Below, in pieces: positions 2,403 to 40,634 of a stretch of 64,000 bases of DNA. The notes under the pieces are model-generated. The model worked only from the letters and a program-made list of their open reading frames with translations. It searched no databases and was not told the origin of the DNA. The stretch is taken from contig NIVC01000119.1 of the NCBI GenBank assembly GCA_002269645.1, forward strand, positions 235,323 through 299,322, written 5' to 3'. The position numbers and the translations under genes are program-made. The DNA comes from Macrostomum lignano (taxonomy: Eukaryota). Within the stretch, counting starts at the first letter, position 1. Every line of letters starts with the position of its first letter.

Positions 2403-2451
2403 TTTTTTTCCAACTGTCAAAAGTAAACAAATCATAACAACAAAATAACTC

Positions 2452-2545
2452 TTTATTAAAGTGCATACCATCAGCCAAAAGTTCACACCAAATAGAATGA
2501 AACAAAATAACATACACCGGTGAATTTCTACAGTTGGCCTTTATT
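2452..2545 (-). promoter_or_regulatory. Candidate polyadenylation signals of POLR3B (AATAAA at 2457-2452 and 2545-2540)
   Basis: tttatt on + at 2452-2457 and 2540-2545, 200-300 nt downstream of the stop codon. Confidence 0.5.
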
Positions 2546-2752
2546 CACTGAAAAGGGTATTATAAATCCCCCCAGTCTTGACAAGTTATGCACTAATCCA
2601 AACTTTAAAACAAGCTGATTTTACAATTACAAGAAACAAGCAGCATAACAAACAACAAAGGAGAGTCATATGATGAACACGTATTCATTCTAGCGAATTT
2701 GAAACCATGATCCATGATAAATAAAATGCAACTCAAAACGTCAAGAAGCTTA

Positions 2753-8700: not shown

Positions 8701-11664
8701 GCTGACTTTGCGGGTCTTCTCGAACTGAGAATTGATGCGAGTCATGTGACCCAGGGCCGAGATGTAGGACAGACGGGTTAGCACCTGAAATTGATGAGCG
8801 ATAGCTTACTTTAAGTAGGCAAGTTAATATTGCAATTAACTTTTTTCGGTGCTAGAAATGCTGGATATATTTTTAATCCATTTCTAATCCAATCACAAAA
8901 AAATCTGACATCACGATGACCAATCGGACACGTCATTAATTTAAAAAATCGACTTTTTCTAAATCAATCGGAAAAATCTATGAACGAATAGACAAACTAA
9001 TGACCAAACCAGAGACCTAATGACCAAACTAACTAGAGATCTAATGGCCGAATCAGAGACCTAATTATTGAATTAGAGACCTAATTATTGAATTAGAGAC
9101 CTAATTATTGAATTAGAGACCTAATTACCGAACTAGAGACCCAAAGACCAAACCAGAGACTTAATGACCGAATATAAAGAAACTAATGACCGAGTTTACA
9201 AATTAATTACCGAACTAGAGACCTAATGGCCGAATTCGAGACCTAATGACCAAACTAGAGACCTAATGGCCGAATTAGAGACCCAATGAGCGAACTAGTA
9301 ATGGCCGAACTAGAGACCTAATGACCGAACTAGAGAGCTAATGACCGATCTGAAAAGTTAATGACCGAACTAGAGACCTAATGCCAGAATTGAAAAATTG
9401 ATGACCAAATAGATAAACTTATGACCGTTTCTACATGACCAAATTGCATAAACTTAAAATGAACCTACCCTACAAAATAAAACACAAACCTGAGTGACTC
9501 CCTGACGTTCCATTCGGAATCGTTTGATATTCCAATTGCCAGACGAGATGGCGGCAACCAAGCCGTTAGTGATCAGATCCTGCCGGATGTGCTTGTGAAT
9601 GTCAAAGGCGGTCGCTTGATTTTTAGGCAGCATCTCGTTGGCAACGAAACGCAAATTATCGTTAAACTTTTTGAAATGATCTTCGAACAGCAGAGCTAAC
9701 AGAGAGCCCGCCAATTCAAGCCTTTTATTGCCGTAGTAGTCGCGATCGTCTGGAGGGATCAGGCCGGCTTGGGCCAGGATCAGCTTGCGCAACATCAGGC
9801 ACAGGTAGACGCACTTCTGATGGAAATTCCAATGTTCGACTGGCACGTGGGCTAGGACTATGTCCTGAGGGATTCGAATGGTAGCGTAGATAGGAGGGGG
9901 AACGATTTAAAAGTGCAAATATATTTCATAAGTACAAAAAGAAAGGCGCTACTAAAAGTACATATAAGGGCAATTCTAAAAGTTCAAAGTCTATTCGAAA
10001 AGTACAAAGACAATTCGAAAAGTGCAAAGAAGGGCCATTCCAAAAGTTCGAGGGAGGGCGACTTAAAATTGCAAGAAGGGTGATTCTAAAAGTGCAGTCT
10101 ATTCTGAAAGTACATAGACAGTTTTAAAAGTGCAAATTTCGAGGAAGGGCGAATCTAAAAGTACAAAGTCGATTCTAAAAGTGCAAAGGGCTAATAAAAA
10201 ATGCAAAGGAGGGCGATTCTAAAAATTCAAAGGACTATTCCAAAATTGCAAGGAAGGGAGATTCTAAAAGTGCAAAGAAGGGCTATTACAAAAGTGCAAG
10301 AAAGGGCGATTATAAAAGCGCAAAGATGGGGATATAGTAGATAGGAAGTAGATAGGGGATATTAAGGAAAGCTAAAAGGATATTATCATCTGTAAGAACA
10401 ATTCTTTAAAAACTTTCACATCATCTTCGCTGTGCCAATACAAACCTTCAAAGTCTGCCTACAATCGTCAATACGACCTTCGGCGTCTTTGCGTTCTCGA
10501 CTGGCTTTCCAAGCCGGGCCGTAGGTCTTCGCAACTCGGATCTTGTTAGATAGCCAGGCTAGGGCCTGATTCTGAGTGAACAGCTTCAGCTTGTGACACT
10601 GCTCTAGACAGGGCAATAGCGCTGATAGAACCTCATCCTCTGTACCAATAGTCTGTACAATCTCTTGATCGCAAATCATGCCCATAGCTTTTAGTACAAC
10701 AACAGCTGGCACTAGTTCGCCAAACGAATTGTGCTCGACGTGGAAAATGCCTTTCTTGGCTACTAGGCCGGTTTTAGATTTGCGCTGATGTGTACTGGAT
10801 GTGACGCTGCACATTATGTGGCCTGTGGGAGATGGGGGAATAATTGGAAATATTATCCCCCATAACGATTTTGCGGACAAAAGTGACGATGTGGGAGTGT
10901 GACAAGAGTGACGATGTGGGAGAGTGACAAGAGTGATAAAAAGAAATGTGCCTACAAGAAGAATGCCGATTTTTATTTGAGAGTGACGAGAGAGCGACGA
11001 TGCTGAGAGGCTGACAAGACTGGAGTGAGGAAGTTAGACAGAATCACAAGAGAAAAATGACACAAATGACAAGAGATCCTTCGAGAGTCTAGAACCAAAC
11101 GTACAAACCTTTATTATCATCCTCAACAATAATCCGATTCTTAGACAGCTGTTCCTGCAGTAGAATGACCTTCTCTGTGCCGCGAATAATAAAATAGCCG
11201 CCAGGATCAAGGGGACACTCGCGTAATCTAGTCAATTCGTTAGGCGTCTTGCCAGTTAACAGACAGTTGGAACTTCGCAGCATGATAGGTATGGATCCAA
11301 TTGGCACACGGTCCATGTTGACTCTCTGATCGCCTCGTATATAAGCGATATCCACTAGTAAGGGAGCAGCGTAGGTCAAATCCCTAAGACGGCACTCGTG
11401 CGGGCTAATCTCTTTAACAATGGGCCCCTCTTCAACGGATGGCCTGCCAACGTAAATATTTTTATATTCCAAATACCAGCGCTGGTCTGCGTCGCACACG
11501 ACTCTCTGATTGGCTAGCATGATAGCTCGAACTTCGGTGTTAACAAAATGATTAAACGATTCGATGTGCTGTTTAACTAGGCCGCGAACTTTTAAAAAAG
11601 CCGGCACTAATTTCCATTTGTCTTCGAGGCTTTTTATCGATTTGTTTAAATTATCGACGTCCAT
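2753..11664 (-). CDS. POLR3B: DNA-directed RNA polymerase III second-largest subunit (RPC2), complete 8-exon gene, 1132 aa
   Basis: Exons 11664-11109, 10822-10446, 9864-9490, 8784-8472, 7361-6993, 6331-6010, 4685-4427, 3580-2753. All introns GT-AG, phases consistent, total 3399 nt. Motifs: [81 protein letters not shown] and C-terminal zinc ribbon. [15 protein letters not shown] and [13 protein letters not shown] are RPC2-type rather than RPB2-type. Confidence 0.97.
3636..4310. repeat. About 21-bp minisatellite (ccaactcccgacattctaatc) filling POLR3B intron 7
   Basis: Tandem repetition seen directly; the ORFs here have a 7-aa period. Confidence 0.9.
4825..5965. repeat. 28-bp minisatellite (cctaaaatcccaaattcagatcctcatc) filling POLR3B intron 6
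   Basis: Tandem repetition seen directly, with variant blocks. Confidence 0.92.
6395..6910. repeat. Degenerate 23-bp minisatellite (cccggaaattcataaacaataaa), POLR3B intron 5
   Basis: Recurring cccggaa...taaacaataaa units. Confidence 0.8.
7445..8455. repeat. Two abutting 24-bp minisatellites (cccagatccctaacacaggggaat; cccagatcaataacaaaggtaaat), POLR3B intron 4
   Basis: Tandem repetition; the ORFs have an 8-aa period; the unit switches near 8105. Confidence 0.92.
8990..9445. repeat. 20-bp minisatellite (gagacctaatgaccgaacta), POLR3B intron 3
   Basis: Tandem repetition seen directly. Confidence 0.85.
9900..10330. repeat. Highly degenerate about 24-bp repeat (gggcgattctaaaagtgcaaagaa), POLR3B intron 2
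   Basis: Recurring ttctaaaagt(g/a)caaa motif. Confidence 0.65.
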
Positions 11665-11859
11665 TGTTTTAGGGAATGCGCATTGACGGCCAACTGAAGT
11701 AAAGTTTTATGAATTCATTTTCAACGTCTTTATCTGTACGAGATGTATCGCGAATTTTTTTCTACTAGATGCTATTAGTAGGGTGCTAAGTGAAAGCTTA
11801 GTGGTATTGTGTGTTGATTTGTTCCTTCCTTCCTTTACAAGCCGTCAAAACATCCAGCT

Positions 11860-12815
11860 TATCCCACCTCTAAAACCAGGCAATCTGAGTTTCTATTTGC
11901 TCTCAAAGATCCATAAGGATCTCAAATTGTGGCTGATTCCCACAGTCCCACCCGAGCAGCCGACAGTCTCTGACTGCAGCGCCAAATTTATCAAACCTCT
12001 TTCTACAACCAATTCCTAAAGAACAAGACTCATTCATCTACGACACTGATTGCTTTCAAGCTGTCATTGATGGTCTGAACTTTGCTAAGGAGGAAAGTGC
12101 TCTCTTGGTTACAATGGACATATGGGCCATATGCAGAAAGCTCTGTCTAGGGTACTCCAGTCTTGAAAAGCTAGTCTAGACTTGGATTTGGTATGCAGAA
12201 ACACAAAGTTAGACCAGTTTACTATAGCAGAACTAGGCTAGCTAGACCATAGACTATAGACTGAACTACCCAAGTCCAGACTAGCTAGTCTGGACTAGGC
12301 TTTCTGCATATGGCCCTTTGAGTCCATTTACATAAACATTCCAATAGACAAAGGTCTGGGTGTAGTAAGGCATGCCTTTGAAAGTCCCAAGAGTCGGTAA
12401 GGCCAGACTAACACATACTTGACTGCTTAGATATTAACCTTAACCAGAATGACTTTATCTTCAGCAACAAGGGGTATTTGCAGATATAAGGCACTGGCAT
12501 GGGGAAAGCCTTTGTGCATTCTTATGCCAACATCTTTATGTTAGACTGGGAGCCTAGGGCCCTAGAAACCACATCTTTTGCTCCCTAACTGTATTTAAAT
12601 GCTATATTTATGTCATCTTCATGGTCAGCTCACATTGATTTTCACAGTAATATTCAGCTCACATTGAACAATAGCCAGATTACTGCTCAAATTTTTATAG
12701 CTATGTCTAGCTATGACTTGCTCAATCTACTCTGACCCAGACTTTTCATTTTGCCAAGTACTGGATCAAACTTTCTTCATCCTAAACACACCTTCAAAGG
12801 GATCATGAAATCCTT
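11860..12815 (+). mobile_element. Decayed Penelope-like retroelement reverse transcriptase
   Basis: Translated fragments FYLLSKIHKDLKLWLIPTVPPEQPTVSDCS, LLVTMD..ESIYINIP, NQNDFIFSNKGYLQI*GTGMGKAFVHSYANIFM and FLHPKHTFKGIMKS match PLE RT motifs (FYLLPKIHK..PPGRPIVSDC, DVESLYTNIP, GTAMG..FAPSYANIFM, HPKHTFKGI). Stops and frameshifts present. Confidence 0.8.
12124..12316. mobile_element. 193-bp MITE with perfect 18-bp TIR (gggccatatgcagaaagc), PIF/Harbinger-like ends
   Basis: TIRs at 12124-12141 and 12299-12316 are exact reverse complements. It splits the RT D-x-E-S codons. TSD imperfect (tat/ttt). Confidence 0.8.
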
Positions 12816-14310
12816 TGAATAAATTATTCTATATACTAAAATTGGATCTAAAACTATATATTATATATAAATTGATAACAAGAAAAGATAGAGCTAGGTT
12901 CATAAACTGTTATCAAGCTTTAAAAAGGCTCATCTTATGACATATTTGCATATGCATCTTGTGTACAATAAAAAATCTAGCACTACCATTGCCTGTTTGC
13001 CATCCCTATGATTTGGCCATTGGCATTTGCTATTTTTTTGCCAAAATAATAGCTTATATCATACATGATATACCATTGCCATTGCAATGTGTTTAATAAA
13101 TAACTTTTAATGTAACATAAGTCTTAAAGCTCTAAATTTAATGTTACATTGGTGACTTGGTCAATTGGATAGAATAGAAGCTCTTCTATATCTTAGAAAG
13201 CTATTTATCAATATTTGCCTATTTGCTCTAGGCCTAATGTGGTAATGGTATGAATTTCTATAATACAAATTGCATATGTGATATATGACTGCAGTGTCAG
13301 ACTTATTTTGGCAACTTCTTTTTGGTCATATAATTGGTTAGAAAATAATTGCTTCAATTTTTTAAAAATATCAAGTTCAATAACTTTGGGCCTACTGGCT
13401 ATGAAAATAATGTCTCTTGGTATGATACAATGACAGTCTTATAATTGGTGTTAACATTATAAAGTACTTTTTTATCTAGAATTTAATCATTTTGCTTAGT
13501 CTATATACTAAAAATCTTAACCTAACAGTGCTAATAGTAATGACTTTGGATTCATGCAATTGCAAATTAATATAGAACTAAAGCATTAAATATGATATAA
13601 CAATGTAAGCAAATTTATGTAATCTCATAATTTTGCTTCTAGCATCTAGCATTCTAATTAATGTATGCCAATCTGAAAGACAAAGATTTCATTCAATTTT
13701 CATATAAATACACTATACTCTATGATATATTATATTTTACATGTCCTAACATTGTATACATTACTGGTTATTAGCTAGTGAGCAAATATAACTAAACAAT
13801 CACATTTTCTTCAACAACAGGTTTTTCTGGACCACTTGGATGCAATGTGGCTAGATGCATAGGCCAATATCATAGCACAAATGGCAACAAAGTGACCTGC
13901 TACTAGCAAGCCTATTGGGCACCCTCCTACCCAGTTTTTTAAGCCATCAGTGCCCCTTGCTAGCCAAAGTAGGGTGACAATACTAGACTATCACTTTTGC
14001 CTTGGTTGCCAAAAAAAGTAGCTTAGATCCTAAAAAGTGCAAAATCTTTCAAAATGATGCCATCTCATGTAATAAGCCACTTCCAAGTAAGGATAACTGA
14101 ACTCAATAATGCTTATAAATTAAAAATCTGGCATATTTAGGTAGTGGCACAAGCAGAAATTTTAGGTAGATAGATTTTAGGTAAAATTTTGGAAAAAAGA
14201 AAGCTGTTCCAGTTGGATTTTCTGGAATTTTTCACCTGGAACACTACTGAATTCTGGGTGTAGACCTGAATTCCAGTCCCCTACAGTTCCAAGCTTACTG
14301 CTATTTACAG

Positions 14311-17300
14311 AAGTCGAATATCACACCCCTTTCGGCACAATGGATCACAACGAAGGCTCTGTGTTGCTGGATGTAAAGAAGAAAATAGCCGACGTACTTG
14401 CTAGCATCAATGCTATCTTACTGTACCCAGCACATCGGGGCTGTCCAGCGCCTTGTGTGCGTATTGAGAGTGTAGTGACATCTTACCGACGCTTACTAGG
14501 AGCAGAAATCCCACTCGCTGACTGCAGATGTGGCAGCGTTGGCGAGTTGGTAGGCAGTTACAGTCAAAGAATCGGCACAGACAGCGTGTGGCTTTGACTC
14601 GCGGATTCTGTGGCCGGAGCCGGCGTCACTAGTCAATCGGATTTGCCAGGCAGGGCCAAAGCCGGCGGCGTGGCGCAACTGACAGTGGCCAGATGCTAAT
14701 GTCGACGCCGTTCTGAAGCAGTGGCAGTGGTACCTAACATCATCTTGTAAATTGCCCCTCAAAAAGCCGCCGCATTGGTCGCCTGTGAATTCTGGACCGG
14801 AAATATATGTCACCGCTAATCAGTCGAAACACTTGGCAGCGCAGTTGAGTTTTGAAAGCCACCAGCACGAGGCGGCGGCTTCCAGTCAGTGCGGCTGCAG
14901 TGCAATCAGCACTGTACAGCAATGGCCTCTGCGGATGCTCCGCGACGTCCTCGGTCTCCTCACGACCGCCGTAGAATGTTCAAACGAATCTCAGCATGGC
15001 TCCGGCTGCTGTGCTGGAGCGGCTCGTTGTCGTTCAAGTCGGCTTATGGGACGTTCTCCAGCGTGGTTGCGGCCTTAACTGTTGCTTCCACCTGATCAGA
15101 TGTTGGGCTCGGGAACTGGATATGGGCCTGCGCTCGTCAGAAAAAAAGCGGGAATAGGAAAACCCACCATTATGGGCACGGAGCCCTTGGCTGACTGAGC
15201 GGACGCTCTGATAGCACTACTCCGTCAGGAGGCGGGCAGATTCCATGTGGCCTTCCAGCGCGGAAGTGGTCGGAAAGACCTCATTGGCTTCCTGCTCCAG
15301 ATGCTGCTGAAGGAGGGCATTCCCCGTGGCTACTGCACAATGGATAATATCGCCGTTGTGTGGAGGTAAGATACTGTAGCTTTAGTGCGCAATCAATGGT
15401 CCGCAACTCAGCACTACTGACAGTGTCTAGCACAGGCCTTACCTCGCGGGGGCTCATTTTTTACCCTGATGAGCCGATGCCCGACATGGCGGCTGGCGTT
15501 GCGAGCACCACGGCCAGCCTCGAACTGCAGCCGGATTCCGAGCTGAACACCGCAAGGGCGAAAGGGTGTATTAAACTGACAATAAAAACTCAGGCAAGAA
15601 GAAACACTATTGTATATCATTGTTTGAAACTGCGACTTGCCTTGTATGCCTTGTATACTCAAGATCCAAGATACCTTGTATCCAGGTTTCCCTTGACTGT
15701 TGCGGTTGCCAATATAAACTGCGGCACCTTGTGCTCCACCATATGTTTCACAGACTCCGTTCATATGCGCGCTTTTTGTGTTAGACTTTGATTAATTTAT
15801 ACATTAATCAGACAGACAGACAGACAGACAAACAGAGAAACAGACAAACACTAAGACAGACAGACAGACAGACAGACAGGCAGGCAGGGAAACAGGTAGA
15901 CAACAGGCAATTCCCGCAATAATTCCAGCCCGGAAAGCATGTCCAGCTGGTTTTCAAAGCCACAAAACCTAGACCAACTTGTGGACCGCATCAACATGCT
16001 ACTGCTAGAAAATTGCTGTATACGGCGACTGCTAAGTCATGTCTCGTCATATTCGACTTCTTGGGACGACAATGGCCTTGCTTCAAAGTGACTCGTAGCT
16101 TAACCAAAGACATCGGTCGGAATCCCACAATGTATGCACTCAAGGACGATCGCAACAAAGAGAATAAGCAGTGGGCAATGGGATACATAAGGGTCCTTGA
16201 AGCCAAAAATGGTCAACTTCGTACTGACCTCCCGTATTGGAATCTCATTGAACTGTATGCCAGTTCAACTCGATTCCAGTCGAAACCGTGGCCCTATGTG
16301 CAGCTGGTTAGCCAAGCACTGCATACTTCCAATGCCATCATCCACAAGCGGAAGCCGGCGCCATTATCTGCGAAAGAGTGCAGGGAAGGCTGGCTTGTCA
16401 TCAGTGACTTTAATTTTGACGCCGACGACTTAGAATGGCTAAAAAGGAGGCACAGAGAACTACATGGCCGGAAAGAAGGCAGTGTCAGATCTGGTGCAAC
16501 TCAGAGACCAGTCACCCTTTCGCCAGCAGAAATTTAGTCCCGCAGATGTGGATGGCACTGGATGCGCCGGAAATTCGCCAACATTTGGGTGACAGTTGCA
16601 TGGTAAACAACAACAGCTGGAATTCCGGCGGGATCAATTGCATTAGGTGCTGATGCCTCCAACTGTCCATAAGTTGAAATTGACGTTTTTAATTGCGGCT
16701 ACCATATAATTGTACTTTCAATTTGCATAATCTGTAATCTTACTCATGATTCTGAGTTCTTACACTACACAATGCTGACCACTGTCTATTTGATGTTGTT
16801 CATTAAAGCAATACCACATGTTCAATATTATGACTAACCTGACAAACATGACCGCACTAAAGAGCCGAAAATCAGCTGAAGGAACTTCGATTTTGGAAGT
16901 ATCTTCCCTTCCGCATTGACTCATTTGATTGTTTCTTGTGTAAGTAGTATGGTATGGCAGGATCGCATCAAAACACTATCCAATTAATTAACTAAGTGAC
17001 ATAGTTTGCACCTTTATGCACCTAATGTTGTATTTTCTAACATTTTACCTAACAGACGCATGCTACTAGATTATTTACTTGAGTGTTCTTGCAGATTTGG
17101 GCAGTTGTATGGGAATTTTAACAAGCGCATGTCTTTTAACACAATGTGTCCTTCACTGAAACCATTTCAGCCATGGGCTCTCCATCTGACAAGTAATGAC
17201 ATCAAAAAGCCACTCTTTGGGGACATCAGGAGTTGGTGCAAAGAAGACTTCCAAGACTTGCAAGAAACAACAGGAACTCCCTGCTGAGTTTAAAGCATAC

Positions 17301-18207
17301 TCAGGTGCTGTCAATCGCTATTGGAGTGTACAATATACCCTTGATTCTTAGAGCAGTGTACAGTACAGTGTTGTGCAGGACGCTTCTATTGTAGCAATTT
17401 TGCATGCGGATGAGGAGCCCACCTGGAAGTGCTGTGTCCTTGTTGTCACAGCTGCTAACAAGAGTACCGGATCCCAGTATTCCGCCACTATCTGGAAGAG
17501 GCCTTTCGAAAGAAAGGCATAAGCGATTGAAGCAACTGCTTTGGCGCGTGTGCAATTGCAGCAACCGCAGCCATCACGATGCCTGTCATACGCTACAATG
17601 ATGGATCAGATTCAGGCCCAAGGCGAAGTTGAGGACGAACTGCGTAAGTTTTTAAGCATATATTAGAAGACGTTAGCAGCCTTGTATATGTATAAGTGTT
17701 GTCGATTAGTTACTTTGCATCTGCCTCGCCACTCTCCTCATTTTTATGTACTTAATAGGCCATCAATTGAGTGGAGTTTGCAAAAAGCTGTCAGAGGCTC
17801 AAGCCGAAAATTGTCAGCTGAAAGCGGAAGTTCTTTGGTTGGAAGCTATCTCCGCTACGTGCTCGTTGGAATCCGACACAACCGTGGCAAGAAGGCAGGC
17901 AGTGCATGTACTGGGTTGCGTCGCAAAGTGACAGGAGCAGTTGCTTGTACTGATCAATGAAGTGTGCAATATTCTGGGTGGCTCCAATATGCACCCTTCA
18001 TCTGAAAATGGTCCGAATTTGGATGATGAGTGCAACCATCAGGCTCCACAATCAGGCCTAAGCGCATCTTCCGCTTTTTTCATACAAGGGCCTATTAGCA
18101 CCAGTCAAAGCACTCAACTGCACCACAGCATGCAATTGGTATTGGCTATGCATTCGTCTAGCGCCCAGCAAGGCGGTTTTGGAGTCGCTATTTGTAAGCC
18201 TAGCTAG
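14311..18207 (+). pseudogene. Disrupted multi-exon gene; N-terminus LOTUS(OST-HTH)-like, a later segment extended-Tudor-like
   Basis: Acceptor tttacag|14311 and cacaATGG at 14340. Codon-like CpG-rich blocks with GT-AG boundaries (e.g. GAG|gtaag near 15367, ttgcag|ATTT near 17096). In-frame stops and frameshifts. DVKKKIADVLAS...YRRLLGAEIPL..GSVGELV resembles LOTUS; PYVQLVSQAL..PAPLSAKECREGWLVISDF..DDLEWLK resembles Tudor. Domain calls are by eye only. Confidence 0.4.
15810..15892. repeat. (caga)n microsatellite, imperfect
   Basis: Seen directly. Confidence 0.85.
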
Positions 18208-18412
18208 GGATTGCAACTTTTTCTTTGACTGGCCTGACCCCTGTGAAATATTGACTATAAAAGTAATGACAATTGTATAGGCCTTTTGCTAAGGAGTAGT
18301 AGGAACAAAATATAGATAAAAAATTTATTAGCATATTTTTGTGACACAAATAAAATTTCTTTGTGTACATTGGTATACAAGAGCTTGGAAAGTGAATTTT
18401 TGTTTCATACAT

Positions 18413-18565
18413 GCGCAATCTTGGGATTCACTTGGCTGTTTCTATTGGCAACATATATGTGTAAGTTGCTATTGGCTGAGAGCAGTCACATGACTACTAT
18501 TCCATCTAATAGCAACTTATATGTGTGTTGACAAAAAATTGGTCAAGCAAATCCCAAGGTTGCAC
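18413..18565. mobile_element. Small foldback element/MITE with arms of about 60 bp
   Basis: 18413-18436 pairs with 18542-18565 (19/24) and 18462-18475 pairs with 18506-18519 (13/14). Confidence 0.7.
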
Positions 18566-20486
18566 CTAAGCATGTTTTGTTTTGGTATATACTATGAGTA
18601 GTACACAATCCCAACATTGGAATATTTAAGACAATAGCAAATAAGTGCCTATAATAGCCTATTATTAGCCTTCAACTCTTATATGAAAAGATTTTCATCT
18701 CTAATAATAAACTAATAAATTATGGGAAGCTACACTTAATAGTCTATAATAAAAAATGGTATAGCCATATAGTCAGAATCATGGCAGAATCATAGAAAAA
18801 ATCCTATTAAAAATTGATATAGTACAGTCTTGCTATTCTATAATATAGTTTATTATATCATTATAGTGTATTTGATATAGTGCATTTCTACATTTCTATT
18901 CTAGCCTTGTTTTTCTTAGAAAATTATCACATTTGAACTCTTAGTGCTGTTGCATCATTAATCAATAAAACTTATACTTTGATTATTGATCAGTAGAATA
19001 ATATAATTAGCTATTGATAAGATTATAATAAAAATATTCTTATTTTATAATAAAAATTTATATAATATTGCAGAATAAATGAAAAAAATATAATTCATAA
19101 ATTCAGCCTTCTTGTTTTTCTGGTTTTTTCCAGGGCGATTTCCATTTTGAACTTGAAATGTATCACAAAATAATGCTATTTTTAGCAAGCTTTGAATGAG
19201 GCTATCCATTAGGCCATAATTGGATATTGAAAAAAACAGCAGAGACTGTTAAAGACTTTCTTTTGATACATGGTGTCCCTGTGCATATGGCAGTGGAGTT
19301 GCTACTAGTAAAATTATTTTTTGCATTTTTAATTTTTGTTGCATAAACTGCTGGTACCTCAACCCTGAACTTTTGTGCTATCACCTGGCTTATATTGTCA
19401 CTCTTCCCCATTATTGTCCTTGCTATGGTGCCTCCTTGCCCCCTTATGGCAAAGAAAAAGAGTACAAATTGGCTTACTTCCTTTTTCTTTCTCTTTTTAA
19501 GCTTAATCTTGTTTATTTTAACTTCTGTTTGATATTGATTAATTAATGACTATTTGTTAAACTTAAACTACTAGCTAACTAACTTATCTATTTCATACCA
19601 TGGCTTTGCTAGGAGTTTTGCTCGTGGTAGCTTAATCTGAATTTAACTTAAATCCAAAATACGCCAATAATATTTAAGCGTATTTATTTTTTAATCAATA
19701 AGCCTAGCCTATTTTGAGTAATTTGCCCATGAGACATAAAGTAATCAATTAATCTCATCTCCAAATGAGCTGAGAATCTATAATATATAAATTATGGTAA
19801 GGCCTAATGGCAATGTGGTAGGGGGATACCACTAAGACTAAATTGGTAAATTTGAACTTTTGTGCACATAATTTTGTATGAACAAGCCCTATGAATTTTG
19901 CTCTAAACCCAGGCAAACTTTGCATCATTTTTCCAGTCCCAGAAGTGTTTTGTTCCCTTCCTGTTCCTGGTCCTCTAGCATCTCTTTGTTGTAATTTTGT
20001 TTTTCCCTATTTATTTCTGTGGTTTTTCTGTGTCCATCTACTGTGTCTGTCCCCTATCCTGGTTTGTGCAAGCATTGCCACCATGCCTTGGAATGTTTTG
20101 TTCTACTCAATATTTATATTGTGTGAATTTTTGTGGTCTTCATACGCATTCCTTCTTTGCTTTTTTGCTTATTTACACCATTTATTTTGCCTATTTGTGA
20201 ATTAAAATTAACTAGCTCATTACTTATTGACTAGCATTTGACTTTTAAGCTTAGCCTCATACCTCAGCACCTGCAACTCATTTTGTCAATAACTAACCTA
20301 ATAACATTTAGCCTGCTGCTTTAACTTCTTTAATAATAATAATAATAATAATATCAGCACCAAACACAATAATTTGTTTTTCAATAATAACATACATGCG
20401 CAACCCCTCTGATTTACACTGGCCATGCAACTTACTTTTTGACCAAAAATGCGACTTACCTGTGAAAGAAACCCTAACGCAATTTT

Positions 20487-20550
20487 GGGTAAACGGCAGG
20501 AGTAACTATGACTGTCTTAATAGGGCTAAATGCCTCATTATCTAATTAGT
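20487..20550 (+). rRNA. Isolated 64-nt 28S (LSU) rRNA fragment spanning the R2/I-PpoI target; non-functional pseudo-fragment, not an rRNA gene
   Basis: 55/64 identity to the conserved GGGTAAACGGCGGGAGTAACTATGACTCTCTTAAGGTAGCCAAATGCCTCGTCATCTAATTAGT; the flanks are not rDNA. Confidence 0.88.
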
Positions 20551-20699
20551 ACTATGTCTGTATTCTTTAGGCTGGGCATTTTTGCGACTTACCCCTGGTC
20601 TAGCACAATTTATGGTGGCCAGATCGGCCAGGTTGGCCAGCAGTTGTGCATGTATGAATAATAATTAGGCCTAACTTAAGCCATAGCCTATCCTGATTT

Positions 20700-20795
20700 A
20701 TTTCCTGTGGGGCGTAAAACAACCAAAGTTCTCATCTCAAAGAAAGCTCTAAGACTTATTTGTTCTATAATACATAAATTATGGTAGTGGCAGCT
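20700..20795 (+). repeat. Unclassified dispersed repeat; paralogous copies at about 19715-19800 and 26995-27092
   Basis: Gap-free 88-nt alignment of 20707-20794 with 27005-27092 (75/88 identical); a more decayed third copy lies at about 19715-19800. Confidence 0.85.
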
Positions 20796-21073
20796 CTACC
20801 TTGCTGGAAGTAATCAGGTCAACAAATAAATGCATTAATTGTACCAGAATCTTTAGTGTCTACTATTTGAATGACTGCGCCACTATATAACCACTCTGCT
20901 ACAATTACAACTACCCTCCCCCCCCCAGAATTTGAGGACCACCCGGGAAAAAAAAACATACTAAACTTTCCAAGTCAACCATGTACTTGGATGACATTGT
21001 TGACTTACCAAGTTTGCAAAGTATCATTGTCGTGTACTTAAAAAGTATGCAATGTTTTTACCCAACTTCAATC

Positions 21074-21912
21074 GACTTTCCAAGTTTGCAAAGTACACTT
21101 CCGATGTCTACATCCAAGTACTTAGAAAGTATCCAAAGTAGAGCCTACTTGGTTCGACTTTCCAAGTTTGCAAAGTACACTTCCGATGTCTGCATCCAAG
21201 TACTTAGAAAGTATCCAAAGTAGAGCCTACTTGGTTCGACTTTCCAAGTTTGCAAAGTACACTTCCGATGTCTACATCCAAGTACTTAGAAAGTATCCAA
21301 AGTAGAGCCTACTTGGTTCGACTTTCCAAGTTTGCAAAGTACACTTCCGATGTCTACATCCAAGTACTTGGAAAGTATCCAAAGTAGAGCCTACTTGGTT
21401 CGACTTTCCAAGTTTGCAAAGTACACTTCCGATGTCTACATCCAAGTACTTGGAAAGTATCCAAAGTAGAGCCTACTTGGTTCGACTTTCCAAGTTTGCA
21501 AAGTACACTTCCGATGTCTACATCCAAGTACTTAGAAAGTATCCAAAGTAGAGCCTACTTGGTTCGACTTTCCAAGTTTGCAAAGTACACTTCCGATGTC
21601 TACATCCAAGTACTTGGAAAGTATCCAAAGTAGAGCCTACTTGGTTCGACTTTCCAAGTTTGCAAAGTACACTTCCGATGTCTACATCCAAGTACTTAGA
21701 AAGTATCCAAAGTAGAGCTTACTTGGTTCGACTTTCCAAGTTTGCAAAGTACACTTCCGATGTCTACATCCAAGTACTTAGAAAGTATCCAAAGTAGAGC
21801 CTACTTGGTTCGACTTTCCAAGTTTGCAAAGTACACTTCCGATGTCTACATCCAAGTACTTGGAAAGTATCCAAAGTAGAGCCTACTTGGTTCGACTTTC
21901 CAAGTTTGCAAA
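21074..21912. repeat. 82-bp tandem array, about 10 near-identical copies
   Basis: gactttccaagtttgc recurs at 21074, 21156, 21238 and onward. Confidence 0.95.
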
Positions 21913-22983
21913 ATCCGTACATACACATTTTTTACCAGCAGGATAACAGCTTTTATTTAGCTGACATCGCTCCCGCTCACAAAAAATGATTATTTGGCTA
22001 TTCCTCGGAATTTTTGTATTCCTGAATACAGCTGAATACAGCTACAGCAATACATCCCGAAGCTATAGGTGTCTGTATTTTTCTTTGGGAAGATTTATGA
22101 GCTTGGCTAGCTGCATCATCAAAGCTAGTTTTCCGTAAAAGGCAAACATTCTTTTGGATTGCATAATTACATGAAAAGACTCTATAAATACATTTATACA
22201 ATTGCACATTGCAAGACTTTAATTCTTTTACTAATCTATTATGATAAAAATTTTAGGAAGTTTTGCTAAAATATCAGTATTTACTGATTCTTGAGTGTTT
22301 GTTTCATTAACAAATGAAATAAATATTACATCTTATATTGTTTGAGGCAAATGATTATTATCTAATTTGTTTAAACTGTCAAAATTCGAAACGAAAATTC
22401 TAATTTTCGCTTTCGCATAGGTTTGTGTAAAATTGTCCTTTTATCTTTTTTTTCAAACTTAGGCTTTAGTTAGATAGGCCTTTTAGCAATTATTTGTTGC
22501 CTTTTTTTAATTTCATATAGTAGTTGATATACCTTGTCGCTCAACAATTGGCTGACTATAGTTATTGTAATTGACATTTTATATGGCCCAGTAGGCCAGC
22601 CTACCCACTATGCCCTATAGGCATAGGCCTGCCTTCTTGGCTTCTTTAACTAGATCTAGAAGCTTTTTTAGAAGGCTAATATTATAGTCATATGGGCTTA
22701 GTATAATACTGATACTGACTCAGAATATAAATATAGATAAAATTTTAAAACTGACTTTTGTGAGTTGTGACTTAAGAATTATTGTCTTGATCTGCATAGT
22801 GGTTAGTATATATATAGGAAAAATCATCTGGCCTCCCTTATCTAACCTTGACCTTGTTTACAGTTTTGCCTTTTAGCTTCTGTTTTTAATCTTCAGTTTC
22901 AGATTTAATGTCATTGTAAAAAGTACAAGAAATGCTTCAGAGTAAAAATACTTTGTTTTTTTTTAATTTTAGACAGCTGGACT

Positions 22984-23382
22984 TAGAGGTCGGATGGGAT
23001 TGAAATCTTCGGGCGGGATTGGGATCGGGAATAATTTTTTTCTCGGGATCGGGATCAGGATCGGGATTTGGGAATCGGGATCAGGTCTTTTAGTGTATTG
23101 TCCATGTAAAGTTAAACAAAATTGAGAAAAGATTGTCAAGATCAAGAAGTAAAACACAACGAAATTGATATGAAGTTTTGTAACCAACAAAGTAAATAAT
23201 GTAACAAGTACAAGTTAAAGCAAAATACCTTCAAGTAATCACTAATTCTATAAATTATTAATCGAAAGACCTGTTCCCAAATCTCGAGTTTTTTAGGGTC
23301 GGGATTCTGGTCCCGCGGGAATTCAATTTTCCTTGGGATCCCGAGATTTCGGGATCGGGATCGGGATCCCGTCCGACCTCTA
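22984..23382. mobile_element. 399-bp hAT-type MITE with (gggatc)n subterminal repeats
   Basis: 16-bp TIR tagaggtcgga(t/c)ggga; perfect 8-bp TSD gctggact at 22976-22983 and 23383-23390. Confidence 0.92.
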
Positions 23383-24481
23383 GCTGGACTAGAATTATCC
23401 AGGCTATGTTATTAATTTTGATTGCAAATTTTTTACTTTTATTGATAATAGATTAGTAGTAATAATACTGTTTTATATTAAGTCTTAGGACATTTGTTGA
23501 TTAGGCCCAATTATAATTATAATCATTCTAATAAATTGTCTTTAGCTTATTAGAAATATAATATAAGCCTAGTTAGTTTTTAATTATAAGCCTAGAAGTA
23601 TTTAGACTTAAAATTTTATTTTTAGTTTATAGAATATTTTTATTTTTAGTATATTTGATGATTTAGATTTTAAGATCAGAAAATTAAGCAATTTATAATA
23701 AAAAATATTTAAGTATATTTATAAACTATGTTATATTATTGGTCTATTAAGGACAAGGCCTAAATTAATTTTTATTTAAAAGCAAAGTAATATTTTTGTT
23801 TGGAATATATTTAGATTTCAATACTTTCTATATTTTATAATATCTCTATAAAAATATTTAAAGACTTATTTATTACATTAAAAAAAGACTGCTATTAGTC
23901 TCAAAATAGTAATTATATTATAAAGTGCATTTACTTAGCATTTCTTTAGATTAAGAACTATTACCTGGGTAAAATTTACATGGTTTAATTTTTTTGTGAA
24001 ATATAATTATTCATATTCATTTAAATTTCCATTTCAACTACCATCTACAAATGTCATCATCTACATTTAAAAAACCTGCTGAAAACAATAAAGATTTGTT
24101 AGCTATATAATTGTCCATTTTTATGCTGCTTTTTTTTCTTTGTCTTGCATTTTTTCTGCCTGTGATCATCTGAATAATTTGTTAAGTTGCAACTTTTATG
24201 TGCATCAATACTTTGAATACAATATAACAGTACACTTTACAATTATTTTGAAGCTCCTTATTGCTTGTTGAATTTTTTCTTTAACAAGTGAAATTCTGTA
24301 TGATGGAATTATTTTTTGTTCTTTGTAACTTTTGCAAGTCCATGGTATGAGTATCAACATTTTGCCAAGTGCTCTATAGATAAATTATATATTTAATAGG
24401 TTCACACTTGGAACCATATACTTTCTCGTAAATAAGTCACCTAAATCACTTTAAAATGTGATAAGTATTTATAGCTCTTGT

Positions 24482-25225
24482 GAACATTGCATACTTGGAA
24501 GGTACCTGAAAAGTGATTTAAGAAAACATTGCATACTTGGAAAGTACTTGAGAAGTGACTTGAGAAAACATTGCATACTTGGAAAGTACTTGAGAAGTGA
24601 CTTGAGAAAACATTGCATACTTGGAAATTACTTGAGAAGTGACTTGAGAAAACATTGCATACTTGGAAAGTACTTGAGAAGTGACTTGAGAAAACATTGC
24701 ATACTTGGAAAGTACTTGAGAAGTGACTTGAGAAAACATTGCATACTTGGAAAGTACTTGAGAAGTGACTTGAGAAAACATTTCATACTTGGAAAGTACT
24801 TGAGAAGTGACTTGAGAAAACATTGCATACTTGGAAAGTACTTGAGAAGTGACTTGAGAAAACATTGCATACTTGGAAAGTACTTGAGAAGTGACTGGAG
24901 AAAACATTGCATACTTGGAAAGTACTTGAGATGTGACTTAAGAAAACATTGCATACTTGGAAAGTACTTGAGAAGTGACTGGAGAAAACATTGCATACTT
25001 GGAAAGTACTTGAGAAGTGACTGGAGAAAACATTGCATACTTGGAAAGTACTTGAGAAGTGACTGGAGAAAACATTACATACTTGGAAAGTACTTGAGAA
25101 GTGACTGGAGAAAACATTGCATACTTGGAAAGTACTTGAGAAGTGACTTGAGAAAACATTGCATACTTGGAAAGTACTTGAGAAGTGACTGGAGAAAACA
25201 TTGCATACTTGGAAAGTACTTATTG
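24482..25225. repeat. 42-bp tandem array (gaaaacattgcatacttggaaagtacttgagaagtgacttga), about 18 copies
   Basis: Seen directly; the ORF has a 14-aa period (KHCILGKYLRSDLR). Confidence 0.95.
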
Positions 25226-27118
25226 AGTGTACTTGGAAAACTTAGAAAGTACTTAGGCGGTACTTGCCACGAGGTTGCATTGTTGACTTACCAAGTACTT
25301 AGCAAGTTTGGTTTGTTTTTTTTTCTCGGGCATGGCAGTCAAAGTAAAATAGGAGAAAGAACTTCGCTGTGATTTGTCTGCAATATTTCTGGATTTATTC
25401 GTGTAACTGCAATGCCAGTGAAAATTCAAATGTTCAACTGCCCCAATTGGTAAAAAAGAACAGAATTATTTTTTCTTTGCCCCTACCTCAGCAGCACTAT
25501 GCTCTATTCTTAGTAAGCATCAAATGAATATTAATGTACATTGAGTTTATAGTGTCAAAGGACCCCAAGTTTTGAACAACTATGTCTAATAAAGACCACT
25601 CCACTATGATTACAACTAGGCCTATCCTCCTTGGAACTGAGGACCCAGAAGACAGAGTACATAGGAGAAAATTTGTTGAGATTTGTGATATGTGATTTTT
25701 TAGCTTAATTTGTGCAAACTTAATCATCTTAATGCAAATAGCATTTCAAATTCGGATTAGGCCCTATAGTCATTTTGCTGACAAGACATTTTAGTGACAG
25801 TTCTTTTGGTGACAAGCAAAAGTCATTTCAATGACAAAAAGAATTACAATTTTAGTTATAGCCATTCTGTTTTTAAATAGAAAATTACTTTTAAAAAATC
25901 TAGGGATATTTAGCCTAAAATTTTATTATTTTTCAAACAGATAAGTATTGCTATATTTAAATTTGTTTATTAACAATTATATAGTTGCAGTCTTTTGAAT
26001 TATGTTTTCCAATTTAAACCTACAACAGTGTTGAATAAATATCTCTGAGTTATTACTGCTTTTTTTGCAGGGTTCTACATTTCACAAGGATTCTCTATAG
26101 GTTTATGGTTTGTGTCTGAATACTCTAGGACAATTCAATGTCTGCACAAAAAGAAAAGAATCTAAGTAGTTTAATTTCTTTTTTAAATATTATATATTCT
26201 TTTGACAAAATTTTTTAAATATATTTCAAAACATTCCTGCCGTAGCCATAGCTATGGCTACAGGATCCTAGGGCAAATACGGAAAAATAGGTGCCTACGG
26301 CAGCTATGGATACGCCTACGGTTGCTAGCTGCTCTTACGGCTACGACTACGGAAATATGGTAGTTGCTGTCACATTCCGTAGATTCCCATAGCCATAAAT
26401 ATTGTGGCAGGCGAGTTGCCACGTATAAACTTGAACTTGACATTTGGAATATTTTTGCATGAGCGTGGTTCATGCGGTGTTTCCCAAATTTTTGGAGTGT
26501 TATCACTCCCGTTGCAGGATTTGATTATACCCATTTCATGTGTTTACTCATACGCAGCTAGATGTGTTTAACAATTTTGTTTATTTCACGTATTTAATGC
26601 CGCCCTGCATCATGTCCTTTTGCATGTTTTTCTCCCTCCAGTGCATGCCCACCTGGTGTCCCTGTTGCGTGACCAATATCTTTTCTGCATATATATATCA
26701 CAATGATTTTTATATGACTTCTTAACCTTGCTACCCCCCCCTTTTTCTTGTTAACTATATTACTTGCTAACTCTCTTTCTTGCTTACTTTATAACTTGCT
26801 ACTTGCATTTTCTGGTTGTCTCCATTGTTAGTTTTCTAGTTGTTTTAGTTTGTTTTGTTTAGTCGCCTCCTCCATCTTGAATCTGAGTAGTGTTGAGTCA
26901 TATTTATCTTTAATGTTGAGCCTGCTTAATAAACTTTAATAAACTTCATTAACTAATATTTATTCACTAATCCAAAGCCATAGTATTTCTTGAGTCATTT
27001 GCCCATGGGGCATAAAATAACCAAAGATCTTATCTCAAAGAAAGCTCTGAGACTCATTCGTTCCATAGTACGTAAATTACGGTGGTGGCAGCAACTACCC
27101 TACTAAAAGTGGGATAGC

Positions 27119-27410
27119 AACGTTTGCCTGCGGGATGTTTGCCAGCCGACGTTTGCCTGCGGGACGTTTGCCAGCCGACGTTTGCCAGCCGACGTTTGCC
27201 AGCCGACGTTTGCCTGCGTGACGTTTGCCTGCCGAAGTTTGCCTGCCGGACGTTTGCCTGCGGGACGTTTGCCAGCCGAAGTTTGCCAGCCGACATTTGC
27301 CAGCCGACATTTGCCAGCCGACGTTTGCCTGCGAGACGTTTGCCAGCCGAAGTTTGCCAGCCAACGTTTGCCTGCTGGAAGTTTGCCAGCAAAAATTTGC
27401 TAGCCAATTT
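27119..27410. repeat. 14/15-bp minisatellite (cgtttgccagccga / cgtttgcctgcggga)
   Basis: Seen directly; CpG-rich. Confidence 0.9.
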
Positions 27411-27569
27411 AAAGCCAGTTAGTGAAAAATTTGATACTGAAATATTCGCAGTTTAACGGTTTGACAAAAACCGTTTTTACTCAAACTTTTTGACGGTTAT
27501 TTGCATATATACAAGTTCGAAAGCAAAATCTATATAAACTATGCAGTTCATTAGTCTAACGTCTAATAT

Positions 27570-27745
27570 CTAGTTCCCAGTGAGCTCCGCGAAACCCACA
27601 AACCCAAGGACACGCGCGAAGCGCGTGTCCTTGGGTTTGTGGGGTGAGCGGAGCGAACGCGCGAGGCACAAAGTGCCGAGCATGAGGAACAAACAGCCAG
27701 CCAATGCGCGAAGCGCATTGGGTGGTCTGGCTTGTGACGAATATA
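27570..27745. other. Cluster of GCGAAGC/GAA-loop hairpins, probably a non-autonomous mobile element of unknown class
   Basis: Perfect 23-bp stem with GAA loop at 27595-27643; 9-bp stem with GAA loop at 27701-27721; ggcac-aaa-gtgcc at about 27665-27677. Confidence 0.6.
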
Positions 27746-30350
27746 CCCAGTGAAAAATGATTTATGGATTCCACGTGGGTTCCACGTGGCCATGTGGAAT
27801 TTAAATGTTTCTTTAATTTTTGCAAATTAATGACTTAAAGATGACATAATGGTATGCAAAGTATTTTTTATGCATTATTTTTTTATTTTTACTGTCCTAA
27901 TGTTGATGTGGATTTTACAAGGAATTCAAGAGAAATAAGCGTATATTGATTCAACATGGAATCCACTTCGATAAAAAACTGTGATACACCACATTCAGAC
28001 GTTTTTATGAAATTACTATAATAAATTATTATATTTATATGCTTTTAAGTAAAAATTAATATCTGAAAGCTAAATTATAATCGGACAATAAGACACTGTT
28101 TGTTAAAATAGACAAAATAGAAGTGAACAATAAAAAACGTTTCGTGCTTTTTAAAATGAAATTAATTTTATTTTATATTTGTCAATGTCTTGGTTCAAGG
28201 CCTTGAAACATAAATTGCCTTGTTTATGGCTATTTAAGCACCTTAAAAATTTTAGTAGACCTAGCCTATAGGCAATAACTTATAAGGCCATGGCCTCCAT
28301 GGGATTAGAAATTAGATAAATCAGTATTTTATCATAGATAGGCCTAATACTTTTGGTAAAATCCATGACCATGATAAATTTATTTAGGCCTATCCAATTT
28401 CTAGGAATCCCATGGCCATGTCCATAGAATGGCTACTCATTTTTTAACTTAAATAGGCCTTTAGAAGTTCATAATTTCCTCTTAGTCCTACCTATCTATT
28501 TATATGTATGCTTATTAGGCCTATTTTAAGCTAGGCCTATAACTATCAATTTAGCCTAAAATTTAGGTCCTTCTATTTTAATTAAGGTTAGGACTAGCTT
28601 GACTTTGTGAATTGTGACTAGTCAATCTAGTTAGTCTGTTAAAAATCTATTAATTTATGATTTTCTTCAAAAAAGCCTGTTAGCATCTTTTGGACTTGTT
28701 GCATTTTTAAAAAACAATTTTTCTCTAATCAATTGCATACAAACAAGCAAGATTTTCATTTTTAGTATATGGATATTATGGATATTATTAATTATAATAA
28801 ATAATTCTTTGCAATTACACTTGCAACTTGCTTTTGGCATAGCTAGCCTAGTAGACCCCTAAGGTTGCTATTATAAATAAGTATTAAATTATTGTAAATT
28901 TGATCTGATTTAGGCCAAGACCAGAATTTAATAGCCATAGGGCATAGCTATTTAGGCTTAGGCCGCTTAGGCCTAATGTTTAATCATACTAGGCCAGCAA
29001 ATATAAAAACATGCATTGCTTTGCTTAAATACTTTATAGTCTAAAATCAATTTTAAAATAAAAAATTAAATTTATAGAAACATTTATTAATTCTTTTTGT
29101 ACTTATTATTTTTTGGTAATTTTATTGATTGACTTAGGTAGAGTTTTCTTTTTTGCTAGAGACAAGGTGCAAAATCATACCTTATGCTTACTTTCAGGGT
29201 TTTATAATTTTAAGGCTTAGAATGCAGTTTCTCTTTTTTCTTATATAAAGGCAGTGCAAATAAGGCTTCAACAAAAAAATAGGTAATGAGATTGCACCTA
29301 AACTGTATCCACTTTTTAATTTCAATTTATAAGGTGGGATTTTAAAATTTAGGGTGCATATGCATACTTTGCGCATAAAAAATAAACCTAGGACTTAGGC
29401 CTAGTTAATTTTAAAATAAACTTTATTAAGTATTCATCCTTAAATTAGTTGTATGAATTATATCAATATAATCTATCAATCTTAATTGGCAACAATTATT
29501 TTTCTATTTCATTTCAGCCTAACATTACATGGCCCATCCTCAAACTTGGATGTCACCTTGGTCTTGCTTTTGAAGAAGCATGCAAAGCTACTTGGAATTT
29601 GAATTTAATATCTAGAATGCTACCTTTTGTGAAGCAATGGTAAGTTTTAGTTATAAACTGATTTTTTTCTGTCATCAAAATCTGTTATAAGATCAAAATC
29701 TATTACAATATTTGTCATCAATCTGTTATAAAATTCTGTAATTTAACCCCTTTCTTTTCTAAGGTTGCTCACCTGACCTGAAGAAGCAGCATTCTGGAAA
29801 TTGGCAGCAGCATGTTTCTGACTGTTCTAATTCTGGTTCATTATATTATTGTTAATTAATTAATGCTATTGACAATGTCAATTTCAAATTATATATTAAA
29901 TCATATGCATAGCGCAACTCAATATATCAATATCTACATCAGTGTGTTTATTCTTTGTGTGCCAGTGACTCACTACTGTACATAAATACACCTTACTTAT
30001 TGAGACATCCTTTTTGAATATATTTTTGTGCAGAAATATTTTTGGCTATAGCTAGTGTTTTTATCGGTGTTTCAGTTTCTTTTATATGGTATTGAGATCT
30101 GGGGTTCATATGAAATTTTGAGATCTGGTATTATTTTGAGATTTAGGATGCAACAATTTATTATGGCAACCAGTATAATGGCTGCTTGCTCAATGACAAT
30201 GTGGATTCTATGTGAAATACATAATTACTTCCATGTGGATCTTCCATGTGGAATCCATATCTTGATTCCACATGGATGGACGGAGACAAATGCACATATG
30301 GATTTCATATGAAAAATCCACATGGAATCCATATCATTTTTTTCACTGGG
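27746..30350. mobile_element. 2.6-kb non-autonomous EnSpm/CACTA-like DNA transposon
   Basis: Inverted ends cccagtgaaaaa..tgat..atggattcca(c/t)gtgg; 2-bp TA TSD; subterminal CCACGTGG-type repeats at both ends. Superfamily is inferred from the CCCAG terminus and 2-bp TSD. Confidence 0.7.
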
Positions 30351-31078
30351 TAATAATATGAGACGTGTGCATCGAAAAAATGACAAGAAAAATCTCACAA
30401 AAACTGCTGTAACTTCAAAACTACAAGTGCGAATTTCACAAGTGAGGTGTCATTTTAAAGAGAAGAATCTGATCTATTTAACGAGTATAGTTTTGTATGG
30501 ATTCACTGCGGAGAAAAGGAACAGGCTTCAGTTGAAATGTTTGTCTTAAGATTATGTCTTTACAAAAGTGCATTTCCTCATGCACATTAAAACTCGAGCT
30601 AAAAATGTTCGAGGGTTATAGGTGCGCCTTACTAAGATGCATAACATTATTGGGTTGTTTTTTTCAATTGTATCAAAAAGTTGGCACTTTGGTTGCAAAA
30701 AATGCAAAAATTGAAAATGTACTTTTACAGTTTTTTGCATTTTTTTCTATACTGCTAATAGTTAAGCATACATACTATGCACCAATTGATGCGCAATTCA
30801 AAGATACACAAGTGTGGAAGTTTTCAATTCTTAAACATTTGAAATCAGAAAGTTATCGACGAAAGACTAAAAATCATGATCTCAAACTGATTTGAGGAAA
30901 AGTGCTCATTATAATTTTTGGAATATGGAAGAAACAATTCAACGCCGTCATCTAATTCCAAACTAACTGTACTTTAAGGTACTGCGATGATTTTTTTATT
31001 GAAAGAGCGAAACCTGTTTAAATATTTGAAAAAATGGAAAAAAAAGTACCTTTTTTCATAGAAATACTCTCTTTTGAC

Positions 31079-40221: not shown

Positions 40222-40634
40222 TTCACTCATTTTAGCGCCGCAGACACTCATTTTAGCGCCGTAGGCACTCATTTTAGCGCCACAGGCACTCATTTTAGCG
40301 CCATAGGCACTCATTTTAGCGCCGCAGACACTCATTTTAGCGCCGTAGGCACTCATTTTAGCGCCGCAGGCACTCATTTTAGCGCCGCAGGCACTCATTT
40401 TAGCGCCGTAGGCACTCATTTTAGCGCCGCAGGCACTCATTTTAGCGCGGCAGGCACTCATTTTAGCGCCGCAGGCACTCATTTTAGCGCCGCAGGCACT
40501 CATTTTAGCTCCGCAGAGACTCACTCCACAGGTCACAAGGTGGGGTGGGGGGACAAAGCATTGGCATGTCCCCGCCAGAGCTTTTACTGGGGGGGACATG
40601 TCCCCCTGTCCCCCACCCGTTGGCGATGCCCCTG
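40222..40634. mobile_element. 21-bp minisatellite (cactcattttagcgccgcagg) next to a hAT-like end (tggcgatgcccctg)
   Basis: About 14 tandem units at 40222-40520; end motif at 40621-40634; same family occurs at 58135-58594. The second TIR was not found. Confidence 0.7.

Follow-up and report, generated by a model that had tools for sequence, protein, structure and literature searches.

In fungi, repeat-induced point mutation (RIP) of the Neurospora type turns CpA into TpA, and the ratio (CpA+TpG)/(ApC+GpT), its substrate index, must be low for RIP. Bulk DNA of vertebrates has a CpG rho (the ratio of observed to expected dinucleotide frequency) of about 0.2. Hypermutation of transposons at TpCpG has been described in the basidiomycete fungi Microbotryum (PMC5381629), and methylation targeted to transposons among invertebrates, in cnidarians and some further groups (PMC8857917). 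For the free-living flatworm Macrostomum lignano, reviews state that DNMT1 and DNMT3 are retained and that 5-methylcytosine (5mC) is low (PMC11292947, PMC9246332, PMC10658182), a statement for which all three cite Wasik et al. 2015. The present analysis concerns a single 64-kb window of M. lignano nuclear DNA, i.e., the whole stretch analysed, in which tracts lying between about 12 and 30 kb are almost devoid of CpG; comparisons of copies are limited to the repeats inside the window. A preliminary description had ascribed these tracts to a localised, repeat-directed cytosine methylation or deamination defence of the RIP type with strong CpA activity. We consider it probable that they reflect methylation-driven decay of CpG to TpG or CpA in old transposon DNA, which is the ordinary animal route, the methylation itself being suggested by its mutational footprint.

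The pooled tracts (seven segments, 9,005 bp, GC content 0.30) contain 12 CpGs against about 205 expected, which gives a strand-symmetrised CpG rho of 0.06 and confirms that the blocks are almost CpG-free. The tracts, together with the block that separates the first two, are as follows, none of them having an assigned strand.

12042–14314: T1, CpG-free; one CpG in 2,273 bp against about 67 expected, rho 0.01, GC 0.34.
14315–18186: CpG-normal block between T1 and T2; observed/expected (o/e) CpG 0.74, GC 0.48.
18187–20398: T2, CpG-poor; CpG rho 0.11, with the depletion tapering at 20.4–20.9 kb.
22139–22983: T3a, CpG-poor; four CpGs, clustered at 22387–22414.
23391–24482: T3b, CpG-free; GC 0.23.
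25401–26240: T4, CpG-free.
28144–29912: T5, CpG-free; two CpGs, GC 0.29, and seven of the 15 tract sites of the palindrome AGGCCT.

According to the list of all CpG positions, CpG-free runs extend over 12042–12394, 12396–14314, 18415–19135, 19137–19622, 19680–20144, 22539–22990, 23375–24426, 25401–25752, 25754–26240, 28144–28963, 28965–29371, and 29373–29912, and the residual CpGs in or beside the tracts include those at 12395, 18414, 19136, 28964, and 29372. The block coordinates proposed earlier were therefore roughly correct, except that the fourth block is CpG-free to 26240 only and is followed by CpG-normal DNA at 26241–26668. Among 400-bp windows outside tandem arrays, CpG o/e is bimodal, with 24 windows below 0.1 and a broad main mode at 0.6–1.2; every 400-bp window with a value below 0.15 falls within 12–30 kb. 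Simple AT-richness is ruled out as the cause of the CpG loss since AT-rich but CpG-normal DNA, which served as the control, also exists (6.8 kb, GC 0.37, rho 0.90). Tandem arrays whose unit lacks CpG constitute the CpG-free runs outside 12–30 kb; they do not account for those inside.

The CpG deficit is largely balanced by a surplus of TpG and CpA, with none in TpA. CpA and TpG together number 1,095 in the tracts against about 949 expected (rho 1.15, a surplus of about 146), whereas TpA numbers 1,029 against about 1,097 (rho 0.94). The tracts are thus rich in TA, as had been noted, through base composition only, TpA being slightly under expectation. The rho of AG/CT is raised to 1.14, versus 0.99 in the controls, and such a rise is reported in a 2026 preprint as a second-order signature of methylated-CpG decay. 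For RIP scoring, TpA/ApT and the substrate index were used along with a composite index, the difference of both, which indicates RIP when it exceeds zero (PMC7781603). TpA/ApT in the tracts is 0.99 versus 0.96 in the controls, the substrate index is 1.47 versus 1.14, and the composite index is -0.48 versus -0.18 and is negative in six of the seven tracts. Given the surplus in CpA/TpG, its absence in TpA, the composite index of -0.48, and simulations (described below) that fit best without a CpA term, the proposed strong CpA activity is not borne out.

The tracts are old transposon interiors or remnants, as follows from a reverse transcriptase (RT) remnant in T1 and from units bounded by inverted repeats that hold T3a, T3b, and T5. 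The elements within the interval, including MITEs (miniature inverted-repeat transposable elements), are listed below.

11783–12800, plus strand: degenerate RT-like remnant with frameshifts and stops, obtained by six-frame reading; T1 starts inside it.
12124–12316, no strand: palindromic, CpG-free MITE inserted in the RT remnant, with 27-nt terminal inverted repeats beginning GGGCCATATGCAGAAAGC.
20942–25330, no strand: transposon-like unit with 34-nt inverted repeats (20942–20975 and 25297–25330) and a CpG-free interior, enclosing T3a and T3b.
22984–23382, no strand: hAT-like MITE of 399 bp, CpG-rich, with 20 CpGs and a CpG o/e of 1.26 (measured over 22984–23388).
27744–30352, no strand: transposon-like unit with 38-nt inverted repeats (27744–27781 and 30315–30352) and the subterminal palindrome GGATTCCACGTGGAATCC, enclosing T5.

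When stitched together, the RT remnant gives a weak match to RVT_1 (E = 0.022), which is under the Pfam cut-off. The unit at 20942–25330 carries related, inverted subterminal arrays, made of 82-nt units at 21072–21912 and of 42-nt units at 24483–25221. The hAT-like MITE has the terminal inverted repeat TAGAGGTCGGAYGGGAT (16 of 17 positions matching), and the 8-bp sequence GCTGGACT stands on either side of it (22976–22983 and 23383–23390) as a perfect target-site duplication; the MITE was inserted into the CpG-free T3 later. Pfam scans of the open reading frames (ORFs) in the 14315–18186 block and in T2 returned no family. At the right end of this CpG-normal block, 17579–18200 may hold the first exons of an unannotated plus-strand gene: an ATG lies near 17579 and a GT...AG intron near 17646–17758, and the frame is coiled-coil-like without a family match.

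Direct evidence for the change from CpG to TpG or CpA comes from about ten sites at which the ancestral state is known or can be deduced from a copy that retains the CpG. Some of these belong to the CCACGTGG motif of the 27744–30352 unit, which is intact twice at the left end, in CpG-normal DNA, and is absent from the right end, where two CCATGTGG and two CCACATGG are found instead. The remainder lie in paralogous repeat copies and in a stray fragment of 28S (large-subunit, LSU) ribosomal RNA.

20659–20811, plus strand: repeat copy with paralogs at 26954–27110 (78 % identity) and 19681–19778.
26954–27110, plus strand: paralog of the former; three of its CpGs survive where 20659–20811 has TpG or CpA.
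20462–20550, plus strand: stray 28S rRNA fragment; local alignment score 93 versus 28 for the next hit.

Alignment confirmed that the pair 20707–20794 and 27005–27092 differs at 13 of 88 positions, with 12 of the differences being transitions; the homology of this pair reaches over 20659–20811 and 26954–27110, and the third copy is that at 19681–19778, where TpA stands in place of one ancestral CpG. No further usable paralog pairs in the tracts came from a sensitive self-BLAST run on the window after masking. The 28S fragment was identified with a query representing the conserved LSU core, based on yeast and human rRNA, and Rfam searches gave no match to it at gathering or E-value thresholds. 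It spans exactly the conserved LSU stretch into which R2 and R1 retrotransposons insert. Its two C-to-T changes at CpG and two at CpA, counted in the preliminary description, were confirmed, and two of its three CpGs have been lost. Read from the alignments, the polarised CpG losses are preceded by a 5' T in about one case in ten and by a 5' A in most.

Gene exons and young retrotransposons in the window, in contrast to the tracts, have normal CpG.

2753–11664, minus strand: gene for the RNA polymerase III subunit RPC2, whose 5' end adjoins T1; its last and first large exons are the ORFs 2753–3577 and 11089–11664.
45482–46198 and 46362–46724, minus strand: exons of a nicotinic-receptor-like subunit, 100 % identical to an M. 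lignano UniRef protein.
58824–60389, plus strand, and 61066–61950, minus strand: two jockey-like RT ORFs of non-long-terminal-repeat type in opposite orientation, GC-rich, with CpG o/e of 0.95–1.12.

The RPC2 exons, for which the top identity in a database search was 72 %, have CpG o/e values of 0.96 and 1.24, and the closest database relatives of the jockey-like ORFs are just 42 % identical. From these gene annotations, the 12–30 kb interval is intergenic and lies on the upstream side of RPC2, with transposon remains nested in it. Repeated DNA in the window is likewise spared. The 21 tandem arrays retain their CpGs, and their copies, compared with the consensus, show no excess at CpG or CpA: the C-to-T frequency per site-copy is 0.042 for CpG, 0.032 for CpA, 0.055 for CpC, and 0.028 for CpT. 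The picture is the same when the arrays are split by location. Arrays inside the interval also retain their CpGs, the 82-nt array having two per unit in essentially all copies. Because the arrays, the hAT-like MITE, and the RT ORFs are unmutated, repetition as such is not the trigger, and the repeat-directed action that had been proposed is not supported; these copies may simply be young. What survives of the earlier proposal is its localised cytosine methylation and deamination, which also forms part of the explanation preferred here, restricted to CpG.

The abrupt ends of the blocks were corroborated by counts of CpG in the 400 bp on each side, which are 0 versus 28 at 14315, 16 versus 1 at 18187, and 0 versus 17 at 26241. 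At the ends of the hAT-like MITE they are 0 versus 20 and 20 versus 0, the right side having been measured at 23389 although the true end is 23382. Since this MITE is a later insertion, its two sharp edges are insertion junctions, so that the edges described earlier are indeed sharp, but at least this example cannot be taken as the sign of a mutational tract. The left boundary of T1 is positional and is not set by element limits, because a CpG gradient runs within one and the same RT remnant (11783–12800), with four CpGs on the side of the RPC2 promoter, within 259 bp, and one in the following 759 bp. The tracts would thus appear sharp-edged because younger CpG-containing elements and arrays may have landed in them later, because DNA close to genes, the RPC2 promoter for example, would have preserved its CpGs, and because CpG-containing motifs at transposon ends were probably conserved in active copies.

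In the mechanism that we favor, germline methylation of CpG would be placed on old, AT-rich transposon interiors and remnants, and deamination of 5mC would then turn CpG into TpG or CpA, with CpA not specially attacked. The process was explored by forward simulation, in which the window's own CpG-normal DNA was evolved until its GC content reached 0.30; the model is a toy one, its rates and starting composition being assumed. With a 40-fold CpG rate and no CpA term, the simulation gives a CpG rho of 0.05, TpA of 0.92, AG of 1.11, and a composite index of -0.31, values near those observed. The fit becomes steadily poorer as the CpA term grows, and at a CpA rate raised at least threefold, the simulated composite index rises above zero and TpA has a rho of at least 1.1, neither of which agrees with the tracts. 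The direction of these simulations is robust; their numbers are not. The tracts were also considered as a fossil of long-ceased methylation, a possibility that was dropped as rho 0.06 shows no regeneration of CpG. With regeneration absent, we infer that the CpG-losing process would be ongoing or would have ceased only recently.

The observations that weigh against methylation-driven decay concern its depth, its patchiness, its sequence context, and the features that the model leaves aside. A simulated 15-fold CpG rate levels off at rho 0.12–0.15, whereas the tracts stand at 0.06 and T1 at 0.01; passive decay must therefore have been unusually efficient. In the toy model, a rho of 0.06 requires CpG transitions at about 40 times (range about 25–100 times) the other C-to-T rate, and T1 alone would require more than 40-fold, an estimate with a large sampling error as just one CpG is observed there. 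The depth of the loss may thus be the one feature that goes beyond routine 5mC decay. Furthermore, blocks with normal CpG, the longest of 3.9 kb, occur inside the interval, so that either methylation is not domain-wide or these blocks are very young. There is also a trend toward CpA, roughly twofold and non-significant, with few polarised changes behind it: C-to-T changes in the 28S fragment affect two of four CpA sites versus one of 18 CpC and CpT sites (Fisher p = 0.07), and transitions in the paralog pairs affect 10 of 49 YpA sites versus 9 of 87 YpC and YpT sites (p = 0.13). The per-context rates were left unpolarised because parsimony across three copies is biased at CpG, where parallel losses mimic T-to-C gains. 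A trend of about twofold fits the compositional bound (less than about twofold), not a strong CpA activity.

The features that the model leaves aside are a GpC excess and an enrichment of motifs. The tracts have a GpC rho of 1.73 versus 1.26 in the controls, and the simulations do not reproduce this excess. The survival of GGCC and the richness in CTAG, both pointed out earlier, were upheld against a first-order Markov model, with 36 occurrences versus 12.9 +/- 3.5 for the former and 54 versus 30.4 +/- 5.7 for the latter. AGGCCT occurs 15 times in the 9 kb of tracts, versus 2.1 +/- 1.4 under the first-order and 3.9 +/- 1.8 under the second-order model; the 12–30 kb interval holds 16 such sites (13230–29397), 15 of them within tract segments, scattered and with AT-rich flanks. 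The motif TAGGCCTA is found eight times in the tracts versus 0.2–0.6 expected under the Markov models. The simulations are silent on AGGCCT and do not address the enrichment of TAGGCCTA, and no explanation was found for either enrichment or for the GpC excess.

The extent to which CpG has been lost (to a rho of 0.06 in the pooled tracts and of 0.01 in T1), the rate of about 40-fold (about 25–100-fold) that the model requires above the 15-fold plateau of 0.12–0.15, and the bimodal, all-or-none CpG status would all be expected if selected transposon DNA had undergone an active, CpG-specific hypermutation stronger than passive 5mC decay, by enzymatic deamination or through missing repair of T:G mismatches. 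Such a process would have an outcome similar to that of TpCpG hypermutation in Microbotryum. However, the required rate is derived from the toy model with its assumed rates and starting composition, just 9 kb is covered, no preference for a 5' T is seen among the polarised losses (about one in ten), and the young repeats in the interval are untouched, so that we regard active hypermutation as rather unlikely. In a check for APOBEC-type editing of retroelements, which would leave strand-clustered C-to-T or G-to-A changes at TpC or CpC in copies made by reverse transcription, the tracts show low TpC and ApC (rho 0.79) and high GpC (1.73), whereas TG and CA are near-symmetric (584 versus 511) and DNA-transposon interiors are among the tracts.

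Alternatively, the tracts may have been CpG-poor on arrival and have decayed little since, their composition being inherited from transposon lineages under long-standing methylation or from foreign DNA poor in CpG. This would agree with the CpG-free parts being the interiors of inverted-repeat-bounded units whose ends retain CpG motifs, and with the single compositional flavor, including the TAGGCCTA enrichment, that is common to all tracts. Nonetheless, one element has lost CpG unequally at its two ends, and paralogs likewise differ in their losses, which indicates decay after copying; moreover, a CpG gradient runs through a single RT remnant beside a promoter, and the 28S fragment, of host origin and with a known ancestor, has lost two of its three CpGs. 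Arrival in a CpG-poor state is, therefore, quite improbable as the principal explanation.

A defence of the RIP type, directed at repeats and deaminating cytosine in CpA as well as in CpG, for which the CpA trends in the 28S fragment and the paralogs, the ancestral CpG seen as TpA at 19681–19778, and the enriched palindrome AGGCCT, with each C in CpC or CpT context and none in CpG or CpA, might be adduced, is highly improbable in view of the negative composite index, a substrate index above that of the controls, TpA/ApT at the control level, the surplus in CpA/TpG (which contradicts what AGGCCT would suggest) and not in TpA, the simulations at CpA rates of threefold and above, which yield a composite index above zero and a rho of at least 1.1 for TpA, the unmutated tandem arrays, MITE, and retrotransposon ORFs, and the absence of the exact double TpA product among five decayed CCACGTGG motifs.

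Several other repetitive features of the window were recorded. Seven different minisatellites, with periods of 34, 21, 28, 23, 24, 20, and 24 nt, occupy the spaces that separate the coding parts of RPC2 (window positions 1279–10330), and most of them retain their CpGs. One 21-nt minisatellite is present at 40224–40523 and again, inverted, at 58135–58475 with about 91 % identity; the two flank the nicotinic-receptor-like gene and may be the ends or copies of a single large element. A purine-rich array of 2.1 kb with the unit AGGAAGAGAGAG occupies 41427–43578, and a perfect (AGT)132 microsatellite at 46751–47147 adjoins the ligand-binding-domain exon of the receptor gene. Two near-perfect hairpins lie at 27584–27654 and 50609–50684, one being GC-rich with 34-nt arms and the second being 76 nt long and 97 % self-complementary; miRNA models matched the 76-nt hairpin below threshold (43 bits versus a gathering score of 95).

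Under methylation-driven CpG decay, the locus would provide a footprint, read from sequence, that suggests a site of germline methylation in this species, namely old transposon DNA and not the adjoining housekeeping gene body, and the decay would appear to have been unusually complete. This amounts to a prediction that could be tested cheaply on bisulfite or nanopore data already in existence, and it removes the claim of RIP in an animal, which was more exciting but is unsupported. It is conceivable, though doubtful, that M. lignano targets dense germline CpG methylation to selected old transposons and not to gene bodies, with methylated CpG mutating several-fold faster than in vertebrates and driving its own substrate to extinction. 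If true, an animal would show an outcome like that of RIP but confined to CpG, and this would also explain why global 5mC is low despite intact DNMT1 and DNMT3.

Compared with described systems, the tracts share with fungal RIP that they are AT-rich, transition-dominated, sharply bounded, and repeat-derived, yet their indices point in the opposite direction and the duplicated DNA of the window is unmutated. The TpCpG hypermutation of Microbotryum is similar in its CpG-directed C-to-T loss in transposons, but its 5' T requirement is not seen here (about one in ten), and the host is an animal. The resemblance to methylation-driven depletion in animals lies in CpG loss accompanied by a TpG/CpA surplus and raised AG/CT, in transposon DNA being hit while promoters and exons are spared, and in the DNMT1 and DNMT3 reported for the species. 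Unlike classic invertebrate gene-body methylation, the adjoining housekeeping gene body is undepleted, and unlike the animal depletion pattern, the loss is all-or-none amid an otherwise CpG-normal genome; at a rho of 0.06, it is also far deeper than that of vertebrate bulk DNA.

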